Below are positions 4,921 to 59,800 of a stretch of DNA of 64,000 nt, piece by piece. A program made the translations under genes and the position numbers. The notes under the pieces are model-generated. The model was not told the origin of the DNA. It did not search any database and saw only the letters and a list, made by a program, of their open reading frames with translations. Source of the DNA: Adineta vaga (Eukaryota; Animalia; Rotifera); NCBI GenBank assembly GCA_021613535.1, contig CP075495.1, forward strand, positions 9,858,001-9,922,000, given 5' to 3'. Each line of letters opens with the position of its first letter. Within the stretch, counting starts at the first letter, position 1.

Positions 4921-5074
4921 ATCACACTTTTTTCTATTCTTGTATTGTATGTGCGAGTGAAAACTCAACTGTTTCATCTATTGTCTTTGTCTTTGTTCCC
5001 TCAAAAAGAGTGAATTAACCAATAAGATTACGCGTGTCCGAAAGAAGACGCCAGTGGTCATCATCAATGCATTC

Positions 5075-50899: not shown

Positions 50900-53022
50900 T
50901 TAGACTATTTCATGATTTGTTGAATCCATTTTGTTCATTGTTCCTAATAATCGAACACCACTATCTGAAGATTGTTTCAGATATTTGCGATTAGAATCAG
51001 TAGTTAGTTCATCTTTTTTAATAGGTAAAAACGTTCGTGCAGATATTTCACTTGTTGCTGATTGAAATCTATTTGTAGAGGTTCGATATGCAAAAAATTC
51101 ATCTTCAGCACGTTTAGCATCATTTTCACCATATTTCATTACATAGGTAGACCATAATTGTTCAAGAACTTCTTGAACAACGAAATCGGATGCATTAGCT
51201 GCTAATAAGCGTATGAAGAAATAACCATCAGCTTCAAGATACTCATTTAAGAATGCATTAATAAGTTTGTTTTGAACATGATCACCGACTTCAGCTGTAA
51301 CATATTTGTAATGGAAACGTAAACGTGGAATTTCTGGTCGTGATGCACGTGCAAGACGAGATTGAATAAAATCATACTGTTGTTGAGTATAACCAAGACG
51401 TATAGACCAAGAGATTAGTGCATATAGATTACATATCAATACGAAAATATACCAAATCCATAGTAATGTAAAAATTTGCTAAAATAAACAAAGAGAAAAA
51501 AGTATGTTTTGTAAACAGTAAGAAGAATGACATGATCGAATGAGAAAGTAAAAAATCTTTACTTATCTATGTAGATTTTTAAAATACTAACGTCATAAAA
51601 ATAAGAATTTTAGATACATATTTTTATCGTTTTACAATCAGTTAGAAAAACATATTCGAATAAAGCAGAAGAATTGGATAGTTACAAAATCGTTTATATG
51701 GGTTAATATTTGATTTATATACCTTCAGTTGTTTTCTACAATTAGTTTCAATAAGTACATAGTTATGAATAGTCATGATCATGTGGATCATATCAGATTT
51801 TCGAAAATTAATGTATAGTCATCATTCTTCATAACTTATTTTCAATCTTATAAAAGTAATTTTTATTTCTATCAACTAACTGCTGAAAAGGCTACTTTCA
51901 TCCTGTTGATTTCAACGTTAGTCTTCATCATCGTTATTATTTCTTTTCTTTGTAATTATACCTGATTGAAAAGATTCACAGTTAATACACATTGAACAGT
52001 AATTCTTTGTAATGGTTCTCCACCACGTAAAGGTTCACGAACATGAAAATCACAGAATGTTTCTCGAGGAAAATATATTGATTCTGGTTGATTGAGACCA
52101 AATCGAAATAATTTAACACTTTCAAAACCAAATTTTAAAAAGTTCGTTCCAAGAAAAAGGCCAAGTAACCAAATTTGTAACAAAACATTTAAGTATAATA
52201 AAGTCTAAAGAAAAATAAAAATTCGACGATATATAACACAAATTAGAAGTTGATTTTCTTCAGACATACTTGATAAATATATAAAGTGTAATGAAATAAT
52301 TTCCTAAGAATTTACCAGTTGCACAACAAATTAACTGAAAGAATTTTTTTAACAATGAAGTTTGTCGTTTTTCGGCATCTGCTTGTCGACGTGCATCATC
52401 AACATACATATCAATTGTATCAACCATATATTTAATCAATTGATCTCGATCATCAAAATCTTTGACTGTTCTTGTTTCACCAGCAGCTTCAATTATATCA
52501 AGAAGATCAATGCCTGATCGAACACTCAATGATCGCCAAAATAAACGTGGTAAATAAAAAAATAAAGCCATTAATAAGATGATAAATGGTGTCCATTGAT
52601 AATAATTTAATACACGAGTTTTCCTATTCATAAAAAAACAAAACAATGAGAATCTTTATAATTTATTCGAAACTTTTCTTTGAAATCTAACTCTTATAAA
52701 TATATATATATATTATAGAAATTAACCTGTCATTTATAGAATTTGGTATTGATTCATTGGAATCTAATCGATAGGTATTCGTAAGAAAACAAACATAATT
52801 TGTATATTTAATATAAGCAGAAGGAAAATTGGCTCGATTCCAACAAGATATTAATGATGATATGTTATTTGAATATAATCGTGATCCTGAGATAACTGAT
52901 AGTGCAATGAGCACATAAACAGTATATTTTCGATTTAAACGATCAAAATCGTCATCGTCGGATGGTTGAGTATGAAATAAAATTGTAATACAAAAAGTAA
53001 ACATATACAAATGATGATCCAT
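50900..53022 (-). CDS. Innexin (proximal first-exon isoform), 4 exons
   Basis: DDDFDRLNRKYT, ISCW...YTNYVCF, YYQWTPFI, FYLPRLFW, FPRETFCDF, VQCVLTVNLFNQQIF and YLEADGYFFIRLL: innexin signatures. Confidence 0.93.
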
Positions 53023-55021
53023 GGTCTGTGTTCTTTTTTTATTCTCGAATATGACTTGATAAGTAATAGAATAGAATAGAAAAGAAAAGACCTAATATTT
53101 GACAACAATGAACAACAAATAAGTGATATAAGCGACAGTACCAGATGGGAATTCCTCTCTGCTCTGTTACGTTTTATACTTATATTTTTTATTCAACGAC
53201 AATATTTATGTGTTAGTAATATTGCGAAGAATCGATCAATTGGGAGTTAAGAGAAAGTATTGCAATGAAGAAGAGAGTGATAGAGAGACAAGAAATTTGT
53301 TACATACAACTCAAGGACAATTTATATCAAATAGATTTTCTACTCTAACAAAAGCACATAATATTCAAAGATAAACGTGTTTAAAATGGCATTTTTTTCT
53401 CTTGACTCATGACATATACAAATACTTATTCAATAAATATTATGAGAATGAAAGAAAGAACAAGGAAAACAATAGAAATGATCAAACTATAAAGATTGAA
53501 ATATACGATAAACTGAAATATGCCGGAAAATCTATATCTTACGACCAAGTTGTTAAGAATTTCTTGAATGAAGGATAGTTTTGATCTTATTAGACTCTAT
53601 TCTATAATTTATATTCCATGCCATATGTCATTAAGAGTCATGTGTATTATCTATTGATGATTGTCTTTTATGAGTAGGAAGAAGAAAATTATCTGAACAG
53701 AAAAAAACCTTCTCTCTCTATTCGCTCTATTTTGTACTGTTATCATGAACATCTGACAAGGAAGTTAATTTAAATCATGAATATGAGAGAGAGAGTATTT
53801 TTTGTGGTTTATTATGCGAAACATCGAACGATTGAGTATCAGATATAAGAAGTCTAATAAAGGTTTGATTTAAAACCTATACAATAATACTTGTAGATAT
53901 CATCCTACTCTTTGAGTTAGAATGCCAGATGATATATATATATATATATATAATGTCAAAGTTATTTCTCAGAATTCTATTTTAATGATGATTCATGTAG
54001 TGGAAGTTAAGTTGATGAAGATAATTTTCATGCACAAGAGTTTTATTACAGGAAAGAACATTCTACGCAATAATTGCCAACAAGATTTCTTTCTTTTGTT
54101 GAATGTTAAAGTGGAAGTGTATAGACAATTATTTGATCTACTTTTAGCCACAAAAGAAATGTAAAATTTTCTTTTCCTAACATCATTCTTATTAATTGCA
54201 ACAATAAGTCAAATTCTATCAAAATCTTTAATCTGCTTCGTCTTTTATTGTTAAACATTACTATAGAAATTCTCTACGGTACATTTAAAAATCATAATTT
54301 GTTATTTTCATCCATTACTTATTCTAATCCCATATGGTTAGTATAGTACCAAGATAAAGGCAAGAGTTTTTACTATGAAATGTATTCCAGACTGAATAGT
54401 AAAAGAAAACGTTATTTCCATTCTCATAATTATACATTTTTCTCTCATGTAATTATTCCATAAAAATCAACAAACATGTTAGTCATCGGAAACAGAAATT
54501 ATTCATTTTGATGTTTTAGTTTTGTTAACAGTTGTACTAATTAGTTTCAAGGATGAAATTAACACTCTGCATTCAGAATATAAGAAAAGAAAATAATATT
54601 TATGTTCATTATACAGTACTAACATTCTTATATTTCACAAAAAAGTATTAATATTTGACATGGAACAACTGGTAGAATCCTTCAGATAGATATCAAGTTT
54701 CTTTTTACTTTACATCTCAAAGTTATTTGCATTATAACTTTTTATTAATACATGACTGAACAATAACTATTTTCAAAAGAATATGAATGATTAAATCCTT
54801 CGAAACAACACCAATAATAATTTTCTTTAATCAATCGCGTACTTTGCTTATATGAAAATAACTACGACATCATTATTCTTTCTATGTATTCTGAATGTCA
54901 CGTACACATTTAGTATAATAGAAATGAATTATATGCCTCAATTAAAACATTTTCTATCAAAATATAATCGTATAGAAAATAAGTACGAAATCTGACATTT
55001 TCTTTTCAAAGTTGTACTTAC

Positions 55022-55308
55022 CGTTCGTCAAAATTACTTGGTATTGTTTTATTTCTATCGATGAAATATGTTGATGATATATAACAGATTTGATTTGTAT
55101 ATTCAACATAGGGCTTAATAAAATTTGCTCGATTCCAACATTCAATTCGATCATCATCGAACTGTTTCGATGCCGTGATTGTCGAAAAGAGTATTAGTAA
55201 GGCAACAGTATATTTATAATTAATCATATCGAATCCATCATCATCCGAACGTAATGTTGATAAAAGCACCGTCGGTACAAGCGTTATTAAATAGAGTAGA
55301 TCGACCAT
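55022..55308 (-). CDS. Alternative distal first coding exon of the innexin (N-terminus, TM1, EL1)
   Basis: DDDGFDMINYKYT...IECWNRANF...YTNQICY ends at CG|gtaagt in phase 2, the same phase as the proximal exon (AG|gttaat at 52727). No other innexin exons were found between 53022 and 55020. Confidence 0.8.
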
Positions 55309-56884
55309 AATTATTTTATTTTGCTGTTGTTAGTTTAAATTATTTTTGTCTTCTAAGTTTCATCTAAACAAAACGAAATAGGATGTAACATATTGATTTG
55401 TATCATGGTCATATGTAAAGAATAGACAGCTTGAAAATGAGATACAGAAGGAGAAGAAAAAAATAACGGTCTTTTTCATAACGTTATGTCAAGTAACACT
55501 TGACTATAACATTTATCAACAAGTGAATCAATATTATTTTAGTCTTTTAAATTGAAATATCATAAAAAGCAAAAAGGAGATGTCTTACTGTTCATTTTTA
55601 TCTTAGTTAGAAAATGATTGTGATTAATTGCAAGCATATTATCTAATACAGAACAAAATAACAAACACACGTACGTGTACATACGACTTGCATCCCATTA
55701 ATTCTTGTGGCTTTACTATCCTTCTGAAGCGTCCTTTTTTTTCAGTATAAGGAAGAACGACAGTAGTAAAGAGCGAGAGAAGAAAAAAAGGAAAAAATGT
55801 CGAAGAAGGGAAAGAGAGAAATGTTCTTTTTACTATTGTATTTTGCCGTATCTAGGCATGTATTGATAGTATATATGTACGTCTATTCTCGTTTTAAAGC
55901 GAATATAATCGAAGAAAGAAAGCGAGAAGATGACTGAGAAGTAACCAGTAAGAAAGACATAAAGATGTGTCGTACTTTTACCTCTTTACTGATACTAATA
56001 CTAAGTTTCGTTATATATTGGACAAAAAATGAGATTGTTGAAAGTGGAATTACAATAATCGAATGAAATGAAATGTTATATGATAAGGATAAAAAACTAT
56101 CTTCATCCAAAATGACCTAAGAATACATAGAAATGATGTACAAAAATGCATGATAGAACTAAAATAGAAGAAAAACTGTCAATTATAACACTCTCCTCCG
56201 CTTTTGTTTGAATTCGATGCAATCAAAGATAATGAGCCATCAGAAAAATTGTCTTCTATAAGCAAAGCATAGAACATGCGGATGCCAGTTCCGAATGGTT
56301 TATTTGATCTTCTCGTCCTTCTTTGTACGAAAGGACTTACTGGACTATTCTTCCCACATTTCCTCTCATCTAATCTCAATAATATAATTCATAAGGTTAC
56401 GTCACTCTCTCTCTCTCTATATATATATATATGGTCCTTTTCTAAACGGAGATATTCCCATCTGTGTGACATAACAATTTCTACAATTGTTTCATTACAA
56501 TTGATGGCTAAGCTCATTGACAGCAGATATAAAATTCTTCGGATCAATAAAGATGAGAAACACAAAAAGAAAAAAAATGATTTATCATTTTATTCACCAA
56601 CTTCTCATTAACTGAATGGCAAAGAAAATCAATAAAATTCTAATATATCGGTTAATTACTTGAATTTTCTAATGACATTTTCTTCCAAATTTAGATGTCT
56701 TTTATTCATTGATCATTGTGAGATTCATAATAAGTAAGAAACAAAACAAGAGAGAAAAAAACACTAAGTTACAACTGAAATATCAAAAAAGAAAAAGAAA
56801 AAAGAGTGCATGACGTGAGCAGACAAGAACAACAGCAACGAAAAAAAAGCAAGGCATTTATTCATTTATATCTCTACTAATTTA

Positions 56885-59800
56885 TTACAAAGAACGTACA
56901 AGAATGTCACTGTGATTATCTTCTTCAGCAAAATCGTTACTTGTTGTATCATCAATTAAACGTAGTTGATAAGGTGAAGCAATTCGATTTGAATGATGAT
57001 GTAGTTGAGAATTACTTTCAGTCATGGAAGAGAAACAACCTGATGTTGATGAACGACATTCTCCAACATCGGAGCCTTCGAAGGATAGAGATGTTGGTGG
57101 CTCAATATGACTTAAAACACCATTAAGAACATGACGGGCCTAATCAATAGAATGAAACGTTGAGAAGAAAAATCCGAACAAGAAACTGTTTGTTTTACCG
57201 TTTCTGAAGATGTTTCATTGGAAAACCATATTGTTGGTTGTTCTCTATCTTTATCCAATAGGATATCATTCAAGCGAGAATGAATATCTTGAAAACTAAG
57301 TCGATTTTCTGGTATATAATGCCAACATGTTATCATCAATTCATATCTACGAAAGAAAGATCAGTTAAATATTGATTGTAAACAAAGGAAAATCCTTGCT
57401 ACAGCTTTAATCATCGAAAATTGCCATATTGATTGTATAGAATTGACTATACATCAAATTCGCTTCACCTTCGCTGACATTTTTTTGTATAGTTTTTCTT
57501 TTGATATCAAGTTAATGTTAGGAACAAATGTATAAACCTCTTAAAACGAAAAGAAAAGGTCGAAAGTACTATTAATATTCCTTCTAGTCAGTTTTTCGTG
57601 CACACGGCATGAATAATATGTTTTTAATATCATGTATAAAGTACTTGCAATGTTCTTTCTCTCTTTCTATAAAATTTCTACATTTACGAAGGTCACACAA
57701 CTTAATAAGATGTTGTTAAGTGTGATTATGACAAATAAATGAAACATTTATTTATCTTTTTGAGAGTTATTATTGATGCAACTTTTAAAGAAAGTTTTAC
57801 TTGTATCGACCTAATGTACAGTCTATTTGTATATAGAATGCTACTTAATCAGATCTTTGTTATTATATAATAGATGCAGAATTACGAAGAACATTTGTTC
57901 ACTGATTCCGATCTAACACAATTATACTATTAATCAAAAGCTAATCAAGAGTCAGTAACTGTCTCAAAACATCATCAATTCTCACGAATACATACAACGT
58001 TTGAGTACATTGTATTGGTTTTTGTAAAGTTCCTCGTGTTGTTGTAACTAATGAAATAACTTGTTGATTATTTAATGGTGAATATGGTACTTGACCTAAT
58101 GTAATAATTTCCCACATAACAATTCCAAATGACCTACAATATTTATATTTAATTTCGATATATCTTCTGATTTCATTCAAAATTTACCATATATCCGAAT
58201 GTGAAGTAAATAATGCATCTAATAAAGATTCGGGTGCCATCCATCGTACAGGTAAAAGTGCTTCACCTGTTTTTCGATAGTAATCTTGTTGACTTAACAT
58301 TCTTGCTAAACCAAAGTCGCCTATTTTAACCATCATTTTTCCATTGGTTTTATTTTCCAATGACGAAACAAGACAATTTCGTGCCGCCAAATCTCTATGA
58401 ATACAAAATAAACATTAACACTTCAATTCCACTTCAAAACATTGTACATACCTATGCACGTATGAGTTTTGTTCAAGATAACAAGCTCCATCTGCTATTT
58501 GTTTCGCAATATCTAAACAATCGTCATAAGATAATTGACATTGATTATCATTATCTTTTGTTGGTCTTGAACGTCTTAGATAATTTTGTAAATCTCCTTG
58601 ATTCATCAATTCAATGACAAGAAATTGTGGTTGATTATTATTTTGAAAACAAACACCAAGTAAATGTATTATATGTTCATGATTAAATTGATTCATTATA
58701 ATTGCTTCTTTAAGAAAATCAACACGTTGAGATGGTGAAGCTGTATTAAGTAATGTCTAGAAAATAATCATGAATAAAAGAGCATTACATGTTGAAAGAT
58801 GAAATCGTTTACTTTGATTGCAACTAATTGTTTCTCCATCATTGTTCCAGCATAAACTTCACCTAGAGATAAAGAAGAAACATTGAAGTAAAAAAATCTA
58901 AAAAGAAAATCATCGGACAAACCAAAAGCTCCTTTGCCAATTAATCGATCAAGTTTAATCATAGTTCGTTCAACGTTTGGTAATTTCGTTACATCAACAT
59001 TTGTTGGTGTATGACTAAAATATTTTTCAATTTAAAATCAATTTCATTGAAATCTATTATACTTACTTCCATGTATAAAGTATATTATCTTTTAATCCAG
59101 TCGGATGTGTTAATGATCGAAGATGTTCTAATTCTTTGTCAGAGATTTCACCATTTTGATAATATTTCTTTTTTAATTTACCATAGAGTTTTTTATTTCG
59201 TACTGAAAATAAAAATATTGAATTGCAACAAAGAATCGAACAAAAATAATTTTCTACTTACGATAACATCCAAAAAATAGAAAACCAAAAAGAAGAAGAA
59301 GTAAAAATGAAATTAAAATTGTAAAACTAACAATTTGATTGCTTGTATATGTACGTTGAATAGCTAAAGAAAATGAGATAAATTTAAATAGAAAATTTCT
59401 TTCACAAACCATCAATTTGTATGTTGATTTGTGAATAATTCTTTTCTTGTCGTCCATACCGATTACCCACATACAATCGAAAAGTTAAATTAGTCTTTTC
59501 AATTAAACTTTTGTTCAATTTGTAGAATGTCTGATTTCCGCTATAGACTATTGTCCAATTATGATTGAATCTACAGAGAAAAAAAAAAGAAAATTATCGA
59601 TTGAACATTCTATTGTATAATACGAGAAGAAATGTTCGATTGATTTTACAGACAATTCCTGTCTTTGGTGAAGGATACAAGATTAGAGGTGATGATAAGT
59701 ACCAGTCGTCTTTTGTCTTGACATTGTCATAAAGTATAGTCTAAACTCAATGTCATTAGCAAATACATAATGACAACGAAGATTCCGACTTGTTATTGTT

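Follow-up and report, generated by a model that had tools for sequence, protein, structure and literature searches.

In this study we describe an innexin gene on the minus strand of a 64-kb window of the bdelloid rotifer Adineta vaga (contig CP075495.1), where it spans approximately 50900-55600 (all positions are those of the window). The gene possesses two candidate first coding exons, a distal one (exon 1a) and a proximal one (exon 1b), which precede a single set of downstream exons (exons 2-4). We consider it likely that this arrangement represents an alternative-first-exon system, probably with two promoters, which yields two innexin isoforms. Each first exon encodes a version of the N-terminal helix, the first transmembrane helix (TM1) and the first extracellular loop (E1), and the locus has the elements of a ShakB-like design, namely alternative exons for this module, compatible splice phase and one shared exon set. 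The system is probably of independent origin from the ShakB system of insects. The evidence that carries this interpretation comes from the anatomy of the locus, its recurrence in other bdelloids, the selection acting upon both first exons and the behaviour of a paralogous gene, and it needs to be weighed against gene models that tell a different story about exon 1a.

A first-pass annotation of the window had proposed two intact, ATG-initiated exons (55308-55022 and 53022-52727) encoding the same N-terminal module, and we can confirm this base for base. Both contain the coding sequence for the N-terminal helix, TM1 and E1 with its two cysteines, and their translations are 43% identical (E 6e-29), with 1b having a 3-residue insertion relative to 1a and being without the acidic cluster before the first cysteine. 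Exon 1a ends ...GAC GAA CG/GTAAGT (the slash marks the splice site), with its phase-2 donor at 55021-55016, whilst exon 1b ends ...AAT GAC AG/GTTAAT, which is also a phase-2 donor. At the sole acceptor, ...tgaatAG/G at 52623, either donor completes an arginine codon (CGG from 1a, AGG from 1b), just as the first-pass annotation had read it, and exon 2 starts with the third base of this codon followed by KTRVLNYYQW. When the exons were translated singly and compared with the Pfam Innexin family (PF00876, curated cut-off 25 bits), all five translations scored above the cut-off (41-65 bits) and were colinear along the full domain, with either first exon matching positions 1-64 (56.6 bits for 1a and 41.3 bits for 1b) and exons 2, 3 and 4 giving one match each, to positions 83-167, 169-246 and 249-333. 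The hallmarks of innexins are also present, with YYQW at the start of TM2 in exon 2 and two cysteines in each of E1 (1a, 1b) and E2 (exon 3). The presence of two open first exons is not due to chance, because stop codons occur at 5-9.5% per frame in the unaligned spacer, such that an open frame of 95-98 codons would be expected there with a probability of only ~1e-3 to 1e-4; the Pfam E-values exclude chance besides. Searches of the whole 64 kb, including the stretch that separates 1a from 1b, with tblastn (E<=10) and with a profile hidden Markov model (HMM) built from 1b revealed no additional exon copies, which bears out the earlier statement that no second set of exons 2-4 lies between the two first exons. 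The features of the locus are collected in Table 1.

Table 1. Features of the two-first-exon innexin locus in the A. vaga window.
Feature	Position	Strand	Evidence or remarks
Candidate promoter/5' leader of exon 1a, conserved non-coding block	55309..55575	-	blastn islands vs L020, L024, L025 and alignment A2
Exon 1a, distal first coding exon	55022..55308	-	ATG at 55308; 287 nt; 95 codons + 2 nt
Spacer, the upstream part of the putative 1a-to-exon 2 intron	53023..55021	-	mostly unalignable between species; without exon relics
Small conserved block inside spacer	54355-54243	-	blastn
Candidate internal promoter, conserved non-coding cassette upstream of exon 1b	53130..53446	-	alignment A1 (four species) and blastn islands
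Exon 1b, proximal first coding exon	52727..53022	-	ATG at 53022; 296 nt; 98 codons + 2 nt
Intron between exon 1b and exon 2, 103 nt	52624..52726	-	single acceptor, AG at 52625-52624
Shared exon 2, TM2 and cytoplasmic loop	52266..52623	-	3' end tentative (donor TAT/GTCTGA)
Shared exon 3, TM3 and E2 with both Cys	51962..52204	-	FCDF...VQCVL
Shared exon 4, TM4 and long fast-evolving C-terminal tail	50900..51478	-	stop TAA at 50902-50900

The same layout is found in other bdelloids. Word searches with the exons returned 30 1a-type and 21 1b-type proteins, most of which are bare open reading frame (ORF) calls on metagenomic rotifer contigs. In every contig long enough, the order is 1a, spacer, 1b, short intron, exon 2, exon 3 and exon 4, and contigs carrying part of the locus (e.g. 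L021, L022, L028) agree with this. Five further distinct loci show the layout, from Rotaria sordida, Rotaria sp. Silwood2 and three metagenomic contigs. The spacer, measured from the last full codon of 1a to the ATG of 1b, varies considerably in length: 0.7 kb in L033 (ENA), the most diverged locus, for which synonymous divergence (dS) is saturated, 1.5 kb in L020 (JGI), 2.3 kb in L024 (ENA), 4.9-6.1 kb in three NCBI assemblies labelled Rotaria sp. Silwood2 (L025-L027) and 6.5 kb in R. sordida (L040/L041). The introns between 1b and exon 2 are 75-118 nt in these loci. At all of them both first exons have an ATG, an open frame and a phase-2 donor giving arginine with an AG/G acceptor, the ATG of 1b in L033 lying a few codons upstream of the aligned region. 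Protein identity across the five other two-exon loci is 85-91% for 1a, and for 1b it is 58-82% in other species. A protein-kinase gene (Pkinase / PK_Tyr_Ser-Thr) lies upstream of 1a in both Rotaria sp. Silwood2 and R. sordida, and a conserved block at 56670-57369 of the window matches the 3' end of that gene, so synteny has been kept. In Didymodactylos, the first exon of the orthologue P0218 groups with the 1b clade with moderate support (SH-aLRT 89) and on a long branch, and the 1a-type exon is on a contig separate from P0218.

The first-pass annotation had suggested that synteny and the ratio of non-synonymous to synonymous divergence (dN/dS) in other rotifers would be informative, and that a decaying distal exon would speak against its proposal. 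Both comparisons came out in favour of it, with both exons under purifying selection, and exon 1a is open, with an intact donor, and constrained in several species. We calculated dN/dS with the NG86 method, together with path-averaged pN/pS. For exon 1a, dN/dS was 0.08-0.26 over all pairs and pN/pS 0.10-0.35 over the two-exon loci, with neutrality rejected in 15 of 15 pairs (P 4e-3 to 1e-21), and the constraint on this exon is as strong as that on the constitutive exons 2 (dN/dS 0.03-0.25) and 3 (0.04-0.23). The corresponding values for exon 1b were 0.08-0.40 and, for pN/pS, mostly 0.19-0.72. Of the two modules, 1b thus evolves faster and 1a is the more conservative, and neither is decaying. 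The one exception to the pN/pS range of 1b is the close pair of Rotaria sp. Silwood2 (L025 13147-13437) and R. sordida (L040 10001-10291), which differs in 1b by 24 non-synonymous vs 4 synonymous changes, compared with 4 non-synonymous vs 8 synonymous in 1a. This suggests episodic relaxed or diversifying selection on 1b in this pair, with a ratio that is not significantly above 1. The C-terminal tail encoded by exon 4 also evolves rapidly, with dN/dS of ~0.5; the tail (50900-51140) is only 47-62% identical between species compared with ~90% for exons 2-3.

A paralogous gene elsewhere in the A. vaga assembly (six chromosome-scale contigs, ~101 Mb) gives further insight into exon 1a. The locus on contig C5 (L013) is a complete innexin gene, annotated as I4U23_024697 (P0219), whose first exon is 78-80% identical to 1a and which has the same CG/GT...AG/G arginine junction. 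This gene and its Rotaria orthologues (P0209, P0211, P0213) are like the window gene in exon structure, phase-2 CG/GT donor and arginine junction, but differ from it in having a single first exon rather than two. Intron 1 is 823 nt in the C5 gene, and in its R. sordida counterpart (L042), where the 1a-type exon also stands alone, it is ~4.9 kb; we found no 1b-like sequence in either of these introns. In R. sordida, the two-exon locus and the C5-type locus both have a downstream neighbour of the same family, and the C5 gene is probably ohnologous to the window gene. Between the window gene and the C5 paralogue, dS is 0.97 for 1a, 1.0 for exon 2 and 0.97 for exon 3. Since the value for 1a equals those for exons 2-3, the similarity of the 1a-type exons has not been maintained by gene conversion.

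Phylogenetic trees of the first exons place 1a and 1b together in a clade apart from the other A. vaga innexin N-termini (SH-aLRT 95). Within this, the 1b clade is well supported (96-99) and has a long stem, and in a reduced tree the 1a sequences, one of which is left unresolved, group without 1b (SH-aLRT 88). The two exons also have in common a CWNRANF motif which the other A. vaga innexins do not possess. Among the A. vaga innexins, the nearest relative of 1a is thus 1b and vice versa, and together with this derived, lineage-specific motif the relationship supports an origin of the system independent of shakB, in agreement with what the first-pass annotation had supposed. The trees fit a duplication of the first exon before the split between the paralogues, with 1b then being lost from the C5-type locus, although they rest on 98 columns and the order of events is therefore not secure. 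On the same comparative grounds, the two-first-exon system is probably old within bdelloids and would predate the split between Adineta and Rotaria.

One further sequence deserves mention in this context. The 522-bp ENA contig encoding P0028 carries a chimeric first exon, consisting of a 1a-type half, the shared CWNRANF and then a 1b-type half, and is either an assembly chimera across a shared 20-nt stretch or a natural product of recombination or conversion. P0028 is the 50%-cluster representative of the 1a-type ORFs and was the only strong match in a HMMER search with exon 1a; among the 150 cluster representatives in that search, none carries exons 2-4 of this gene and there was no full-length 1a-type protein.

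We were also interested in what an exchange of the two modules might mean for the channel. Using the orthologue P0205 as a stand-in for the window protein, we obtained an alignment with INX-6 (5H1Q) over residues 24-336 (E 4e-29), in which the exon 1/2 junction falls just before the YYQW at the start of TM2, with the swap boundary 8 residues before this motif. In INX-6, TM1 is the innermost, pore-facing helix, and the constrictions of the pore lie at the N-terminal funnel and at the E1 helices (PMC6084585). Given this alignment and structure, the swapped module holds all of the pore-lining elements and half of the extracellular face. When 28 1a-type and 21 1b-type sequences were compared, 25 columns were conserved and identical, and 8 were conserved in both types but different between them. 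These differing columns cluster at the border of TM1 and E1, where 1a-type sequences read QFDDD---RIEC, with a mean net charge of -2.75, and 1b-type sequences read L..n(I/V)SSLISC, with a mean net charge of -0.48 and with the 3-residue insertion forming an N-x-S sequon in 16 of the 21. It is plausible from these sequence differences that the swap alters charge selectivity, voltage gating, glycosylation or docking.

The first-pass annotation had gone further in proposing that the two exons are served by alternative promoters, and this part of its proposal receives qualified support from conserved non-coding sequence upstream of each exon. We used blastn to compare the window with three species whose dS to it is 0.55-0.67. 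Most of the 2-kb spacer cannot be aligned, whereas the block directly upstream of each first exon does align. Upstream of 1b, the four species share the invariant stretches GACACGT, CCCAATTGATC (53244-53234), TATAAGTATAAAA (53184-53172) and TTCCCATCTGGT (53151-53140) (alignment A1). The last of these sits ~20 nt past TATAAGTATAAAA and is followed by an unconserved leader of 35-120 nt which runs to the ATG of 1b. In its layout this cassette looks like a CCAAT/TATA core promoter with a start region. Upstream of 1a (alignment A2), there are conserved blocks at 55575-55489, which include the palindrome CAAGTGTYACTTG around 55503-55489, and an invariant TAGATGA at 55366-55360. In all loci, that of the C5 paralogue (L013 ~5062-5068) included, the latter motif precedes the 1a-type ATG by 25-55 nt, and it supplies a conserved upstream ATG with a short upstream ORF whose peptide is not conserved. 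In the cDNA L034, the point at which the 5' untranslated region ceases to follow the genomic consensus lies immediately upstream of the ATGA, and this coincidence suggests a non-coding leader exon; TAGATGA may thus act as the 3' splice site of a leader intron, as a conserved upstream ATG, or as both. Within the spacer there is also a small island of conservation (54243-54355), in which 113 nt are 75% identical to L024, with short and marginal matches inside it to L020 and L013 (39 and 38 nt, respectively). The island lacks coding potential and might act in regulation, for instance as an enhancer.

Evidence from gene models and cDNA is mixed, and several points weigh against an alternative-first-exon reading of this gene. 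To recover full-length models we used as a query a 324-aa ORF from L033, which covers exons 3-4 with a short in-frame intron. All of the annotated orthologues of the window gene, recognised by an exon 2 that is 88-91% identical, begin with 1b; these are P0205 from A. steineri, P0207 from R. sordida and P0201, P0202 and P0204 from Rotaria sp. Silwood1/2. Exon 1a is annotated as a separate small gene of 96-122 aa in every bdelloid genome examined, and among the gene models and cDNA contigs examined none joins a 1a-type exon to exon 2 of this locus, an absence of little weight in that it does not extend to sequencing reads. If exon 1a is read without splicing, there is a stop codon (TAA, TAG or TGA) right after the CGG in all species. 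The 1b donors are themselves off-consensus on the intron side (GTTAT), with CAG on the exon side, and the shared exons of the window require an unusual donor: at the exon 2/3 boundary (52188-52270), only TAT/GTCTGA, 4 nt downstream of the site used by relatives, keeps the frame.

The 1b-to-exon 2 junction is present in gene models of at least five assemblies, most of which are 491 aa in length, equal to the 98+1+119+81+192 of our exon model. The 1a-type N-termini that do occur on full-length models all belong to the paralogous gene type (P0219, P0209, P0211, P0213 and the cDNA P0214). P0214 comes from intron-less contigs of 1.5-1.6 kb (L034-L037) in three JGI samples and one Logan run, which identifies them as cDNA; in this sequence, which is from a relative, a 1a-type exon is spliced to exon 2 through the same arginine codon. 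It is therefore proven that the donor, phase and junction of the 1a type work in the sister gene, and by analogy with it we infer the 55022→52623 junction at this locus. Nine 1a-type donors were sampled, C5-type genes included, and these read GTRAG or GTAGG with G at +5 in all nine. We had considered whether the pairing of a strong 1a donor with a weak 1b donor might be a sign of competition between them, but have downgraded this idea because the exon side of the 1b donor is the consensus CAG. A scan of metagenome contigs for CGG followed by the start of exon 2 gave no hits; the AGG control also gave none, despite a perfect match in L020-L022, and the scan is hence uninformative.

Taking these data together, we propose that an old tandem duplication of exon 1 would have given rise to two mutually exclusive first coding exons, which have separate ATGs and probably separate promoters. 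Transcripts begun upstream of 1a would be spliced from 55022 to 52623, removing 1b within a 2.4-kb intron, whereas those begun at an internal promoter near 53150 would be spliced from 52727 to 52623. Lacking a conserved acceptor, exon 1b could not be included in the 1a transcripts. The two proteins, of ~488 and 491 aa, would share their entire sequence from a point shortly before YYQW and TM2 onwards and would differ in the whole of the N-terminal helix, TM1 and E1, a region that not only lines the pore but also faces the hemichannel of the partner cell. The likely outcome, judging from the sequences, would be two channel types which differ in charge profile, gating and/or docking and which are expressed in different cells. 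By analogy with ShakB, the two isoforms might also be paired in asymmetric heterotypic junctions. The two transcription start sites, along with all of the physiology, are features that we infer.

Of the other explanations, the one that survives best is that exon 1a is not joined to exons 2-4 at all, and is instead either a conserved free-standing product of 96 aa or spliced elsewhere, with the innexin being made from 1b only. We regard this as unlikely, but it draws on real observations, namely the consistently separate annotation of 1a (96-122 aa), the 1b start of all full-length orthologue models, the stop directly after the arginine codon in the unspliced reading of all species and the failure to find a joining transcript. 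The separate models, however, contradict one another and have the look of ab initio artefacts: those in Rotaria are single exons of 96 aa, the A. vaga model P0001 joins 1a via a 30-nt "intron" to intronic sequence, and the Didymodactylos model has two exons (98 aa), the second of which is different again. As the first-pass annotation had foreseen, pipelines thus call the distal exon a fragment, with the public A. vaga protein that is identical to exon 1a, I4U23_008846, being 122 aa in length, and lone 'genes' of 96-98 aa in Rotaria and Didymodactylos. A free-standing product also sits poorly with conservation of the intron side of the donor past the stop triplet, where G at +5 is kept in 9/9, and with the splicing of an identical donor, phase and arginine in the paralogue, cDNA included. 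No other part of the spacer shows conservation of a coding kind.

An explanation with only one promoter, which we judge to be improbable, would have all transcripts begin upstream of 1a and be either cis-spliced from 1a to exon 2 or processed before 1b, for example by spliced-leader trans-splicing, a process that occurs in bdelloids. The layout is compatible with this, and an AG is found 4 nt before the 1b ATG in the window and directly before it in L025. This acceptor near the 1b ATG is not conserved, however, with L024 and L033 being without one within 30 nt, and the invariant cassette with its CCAAT/TATA-like elements, which lies 120-220 nt upstream of 1b and is followed by an unconserved leader, resembles a core promoter.

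It is also conceivable, if rather improbable, that the design is real in bdelloids but that the locus has been compromised in A. vaga, either through a frameshift at the exon 2/3 boundary or through the recent silencing of one first exon. Relatives use a phase-2 donor here (AA/GTATGT or AA/GTAAGT) together with an AG/A acceptor, and the same sites give a stop in the window owing to a net -1 indel in low-complexity sequence at ~52195-52188. The in-frame donor 4 nt downstream nevertheless restores the frame exactly, giving the peptide IKY-TLLYL-NV in place of the IK-(I/V)YYIF-NV of relatives, and each of the five exons has an open frame. Elsewhere in exons 2-3, comparison with relatives gives dN/dS of 0.04-0.2, and the indels lie within TATATA and AAA runs, which would be expected to be typical places for assembly errors. 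The anomaly at this boundary reflects either a frameshift that has been compensated, an error in the assembly or a genuine lesion.

Finally, the first-pass annotation had named a collapsed tandem duplicate as a reading that would refute its proposal. A tandem duplicate of the gene that has collapsed or decayed, leaving 1a as the relic of an upstream copy, is very improbable, as is an assembly artefact, and these readings are rejected by the cross-species data. Although this genome does contain tandem duplicates of whole innexin genes, the searches revealed no remnant of exons 2-4 in the stretch from 1a to 1b, the layout recurs in independent assemblies and at least five other distinct loci, and 1a is under strong purifying selection and is the counterpart of the sole first exon of the paralogue.

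An alternative-first-exon system of the kind that we favour can be compared with two known cases. In Drosophila, isoforms from shakB face each other across a heterotypic synapse that rectifies (PMC4197764). The swap boundary between ShakB(Lethal) and ShakB(Neural+16), encoded by shaking-B (shakB/inx8), is at the same structural place as in the rotifer gene. The two cases differ in that the rotifer modules are simple single-exon duplicates with their own ATGs and an independent origin, and in that the rotifer case is known from DNA and gene models. The Caenorhabditis elegans gene unc-7 also produces isoforms from alternative 5' ends, the choice of which sets rectification, as for UNC-7b with UNC-9, but the differences among these isoforms are confined to the cytoplasmic N-terminus ahead of TM1 (PMC7455501). 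In the rotifer gene, TM1 and the whole of the E1 loop would be exchanged as well. The literature on innexins with alternative first exons and on rotifer innexins yielded no description of this system. If both exons are used, this would be, within the literature searched, the first innexin outside the arthropods to exchange the whole module of N-terminus, TM1 and E1, and it would provide convergent evidence that module swapping is a preferred route to diversify electrical coupling. The two isoforms would form a natural chimera pair, identical from TM2 to the C-terminus, which could be useful in studies of charge selectivity, rectification and docking. Counts of bdelloid innexins and catalogues of their isoforms would also need correction, because the distal exon has been mis-annotated as a small gene.

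A bolder version of this proposal, which we put forward tentatively and consider doubtful as a whole, is that bdelloids, independently of insects and before their crown radiation, evolved a ShakB-like switch of the complete innexin pore lining. Under this proposal 1a would have kept an acidic ring at the border of TM1 and E1, and 1b would have lost the ring and gained a sequon-bearing insertion at the pore mouth. Isoform B might then be a non-junctional, glycosylated, pannexin-like hemichannel, or might serve as the asymmetric partner of isoform A in rectifying junctions.

A different form of innexin duplication is seen on contig C6 of the same assembly (9805900-9809200, L043), where two complete innexin genes lie in tandem ~2 kb apart, the paralogous region on C3 (6712700-6714200, L044) having just one gene. 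Here the whole gene has been duplicated, unlike in the window, where the duplication concerns an exon. We had considered C6 as a second innexin locus with two first exons and rejected it, since each N-terminal match there has its own downstream exons, and the pair thereby serves as a positive control for the detection of downstream exons behind each N-terminal match.

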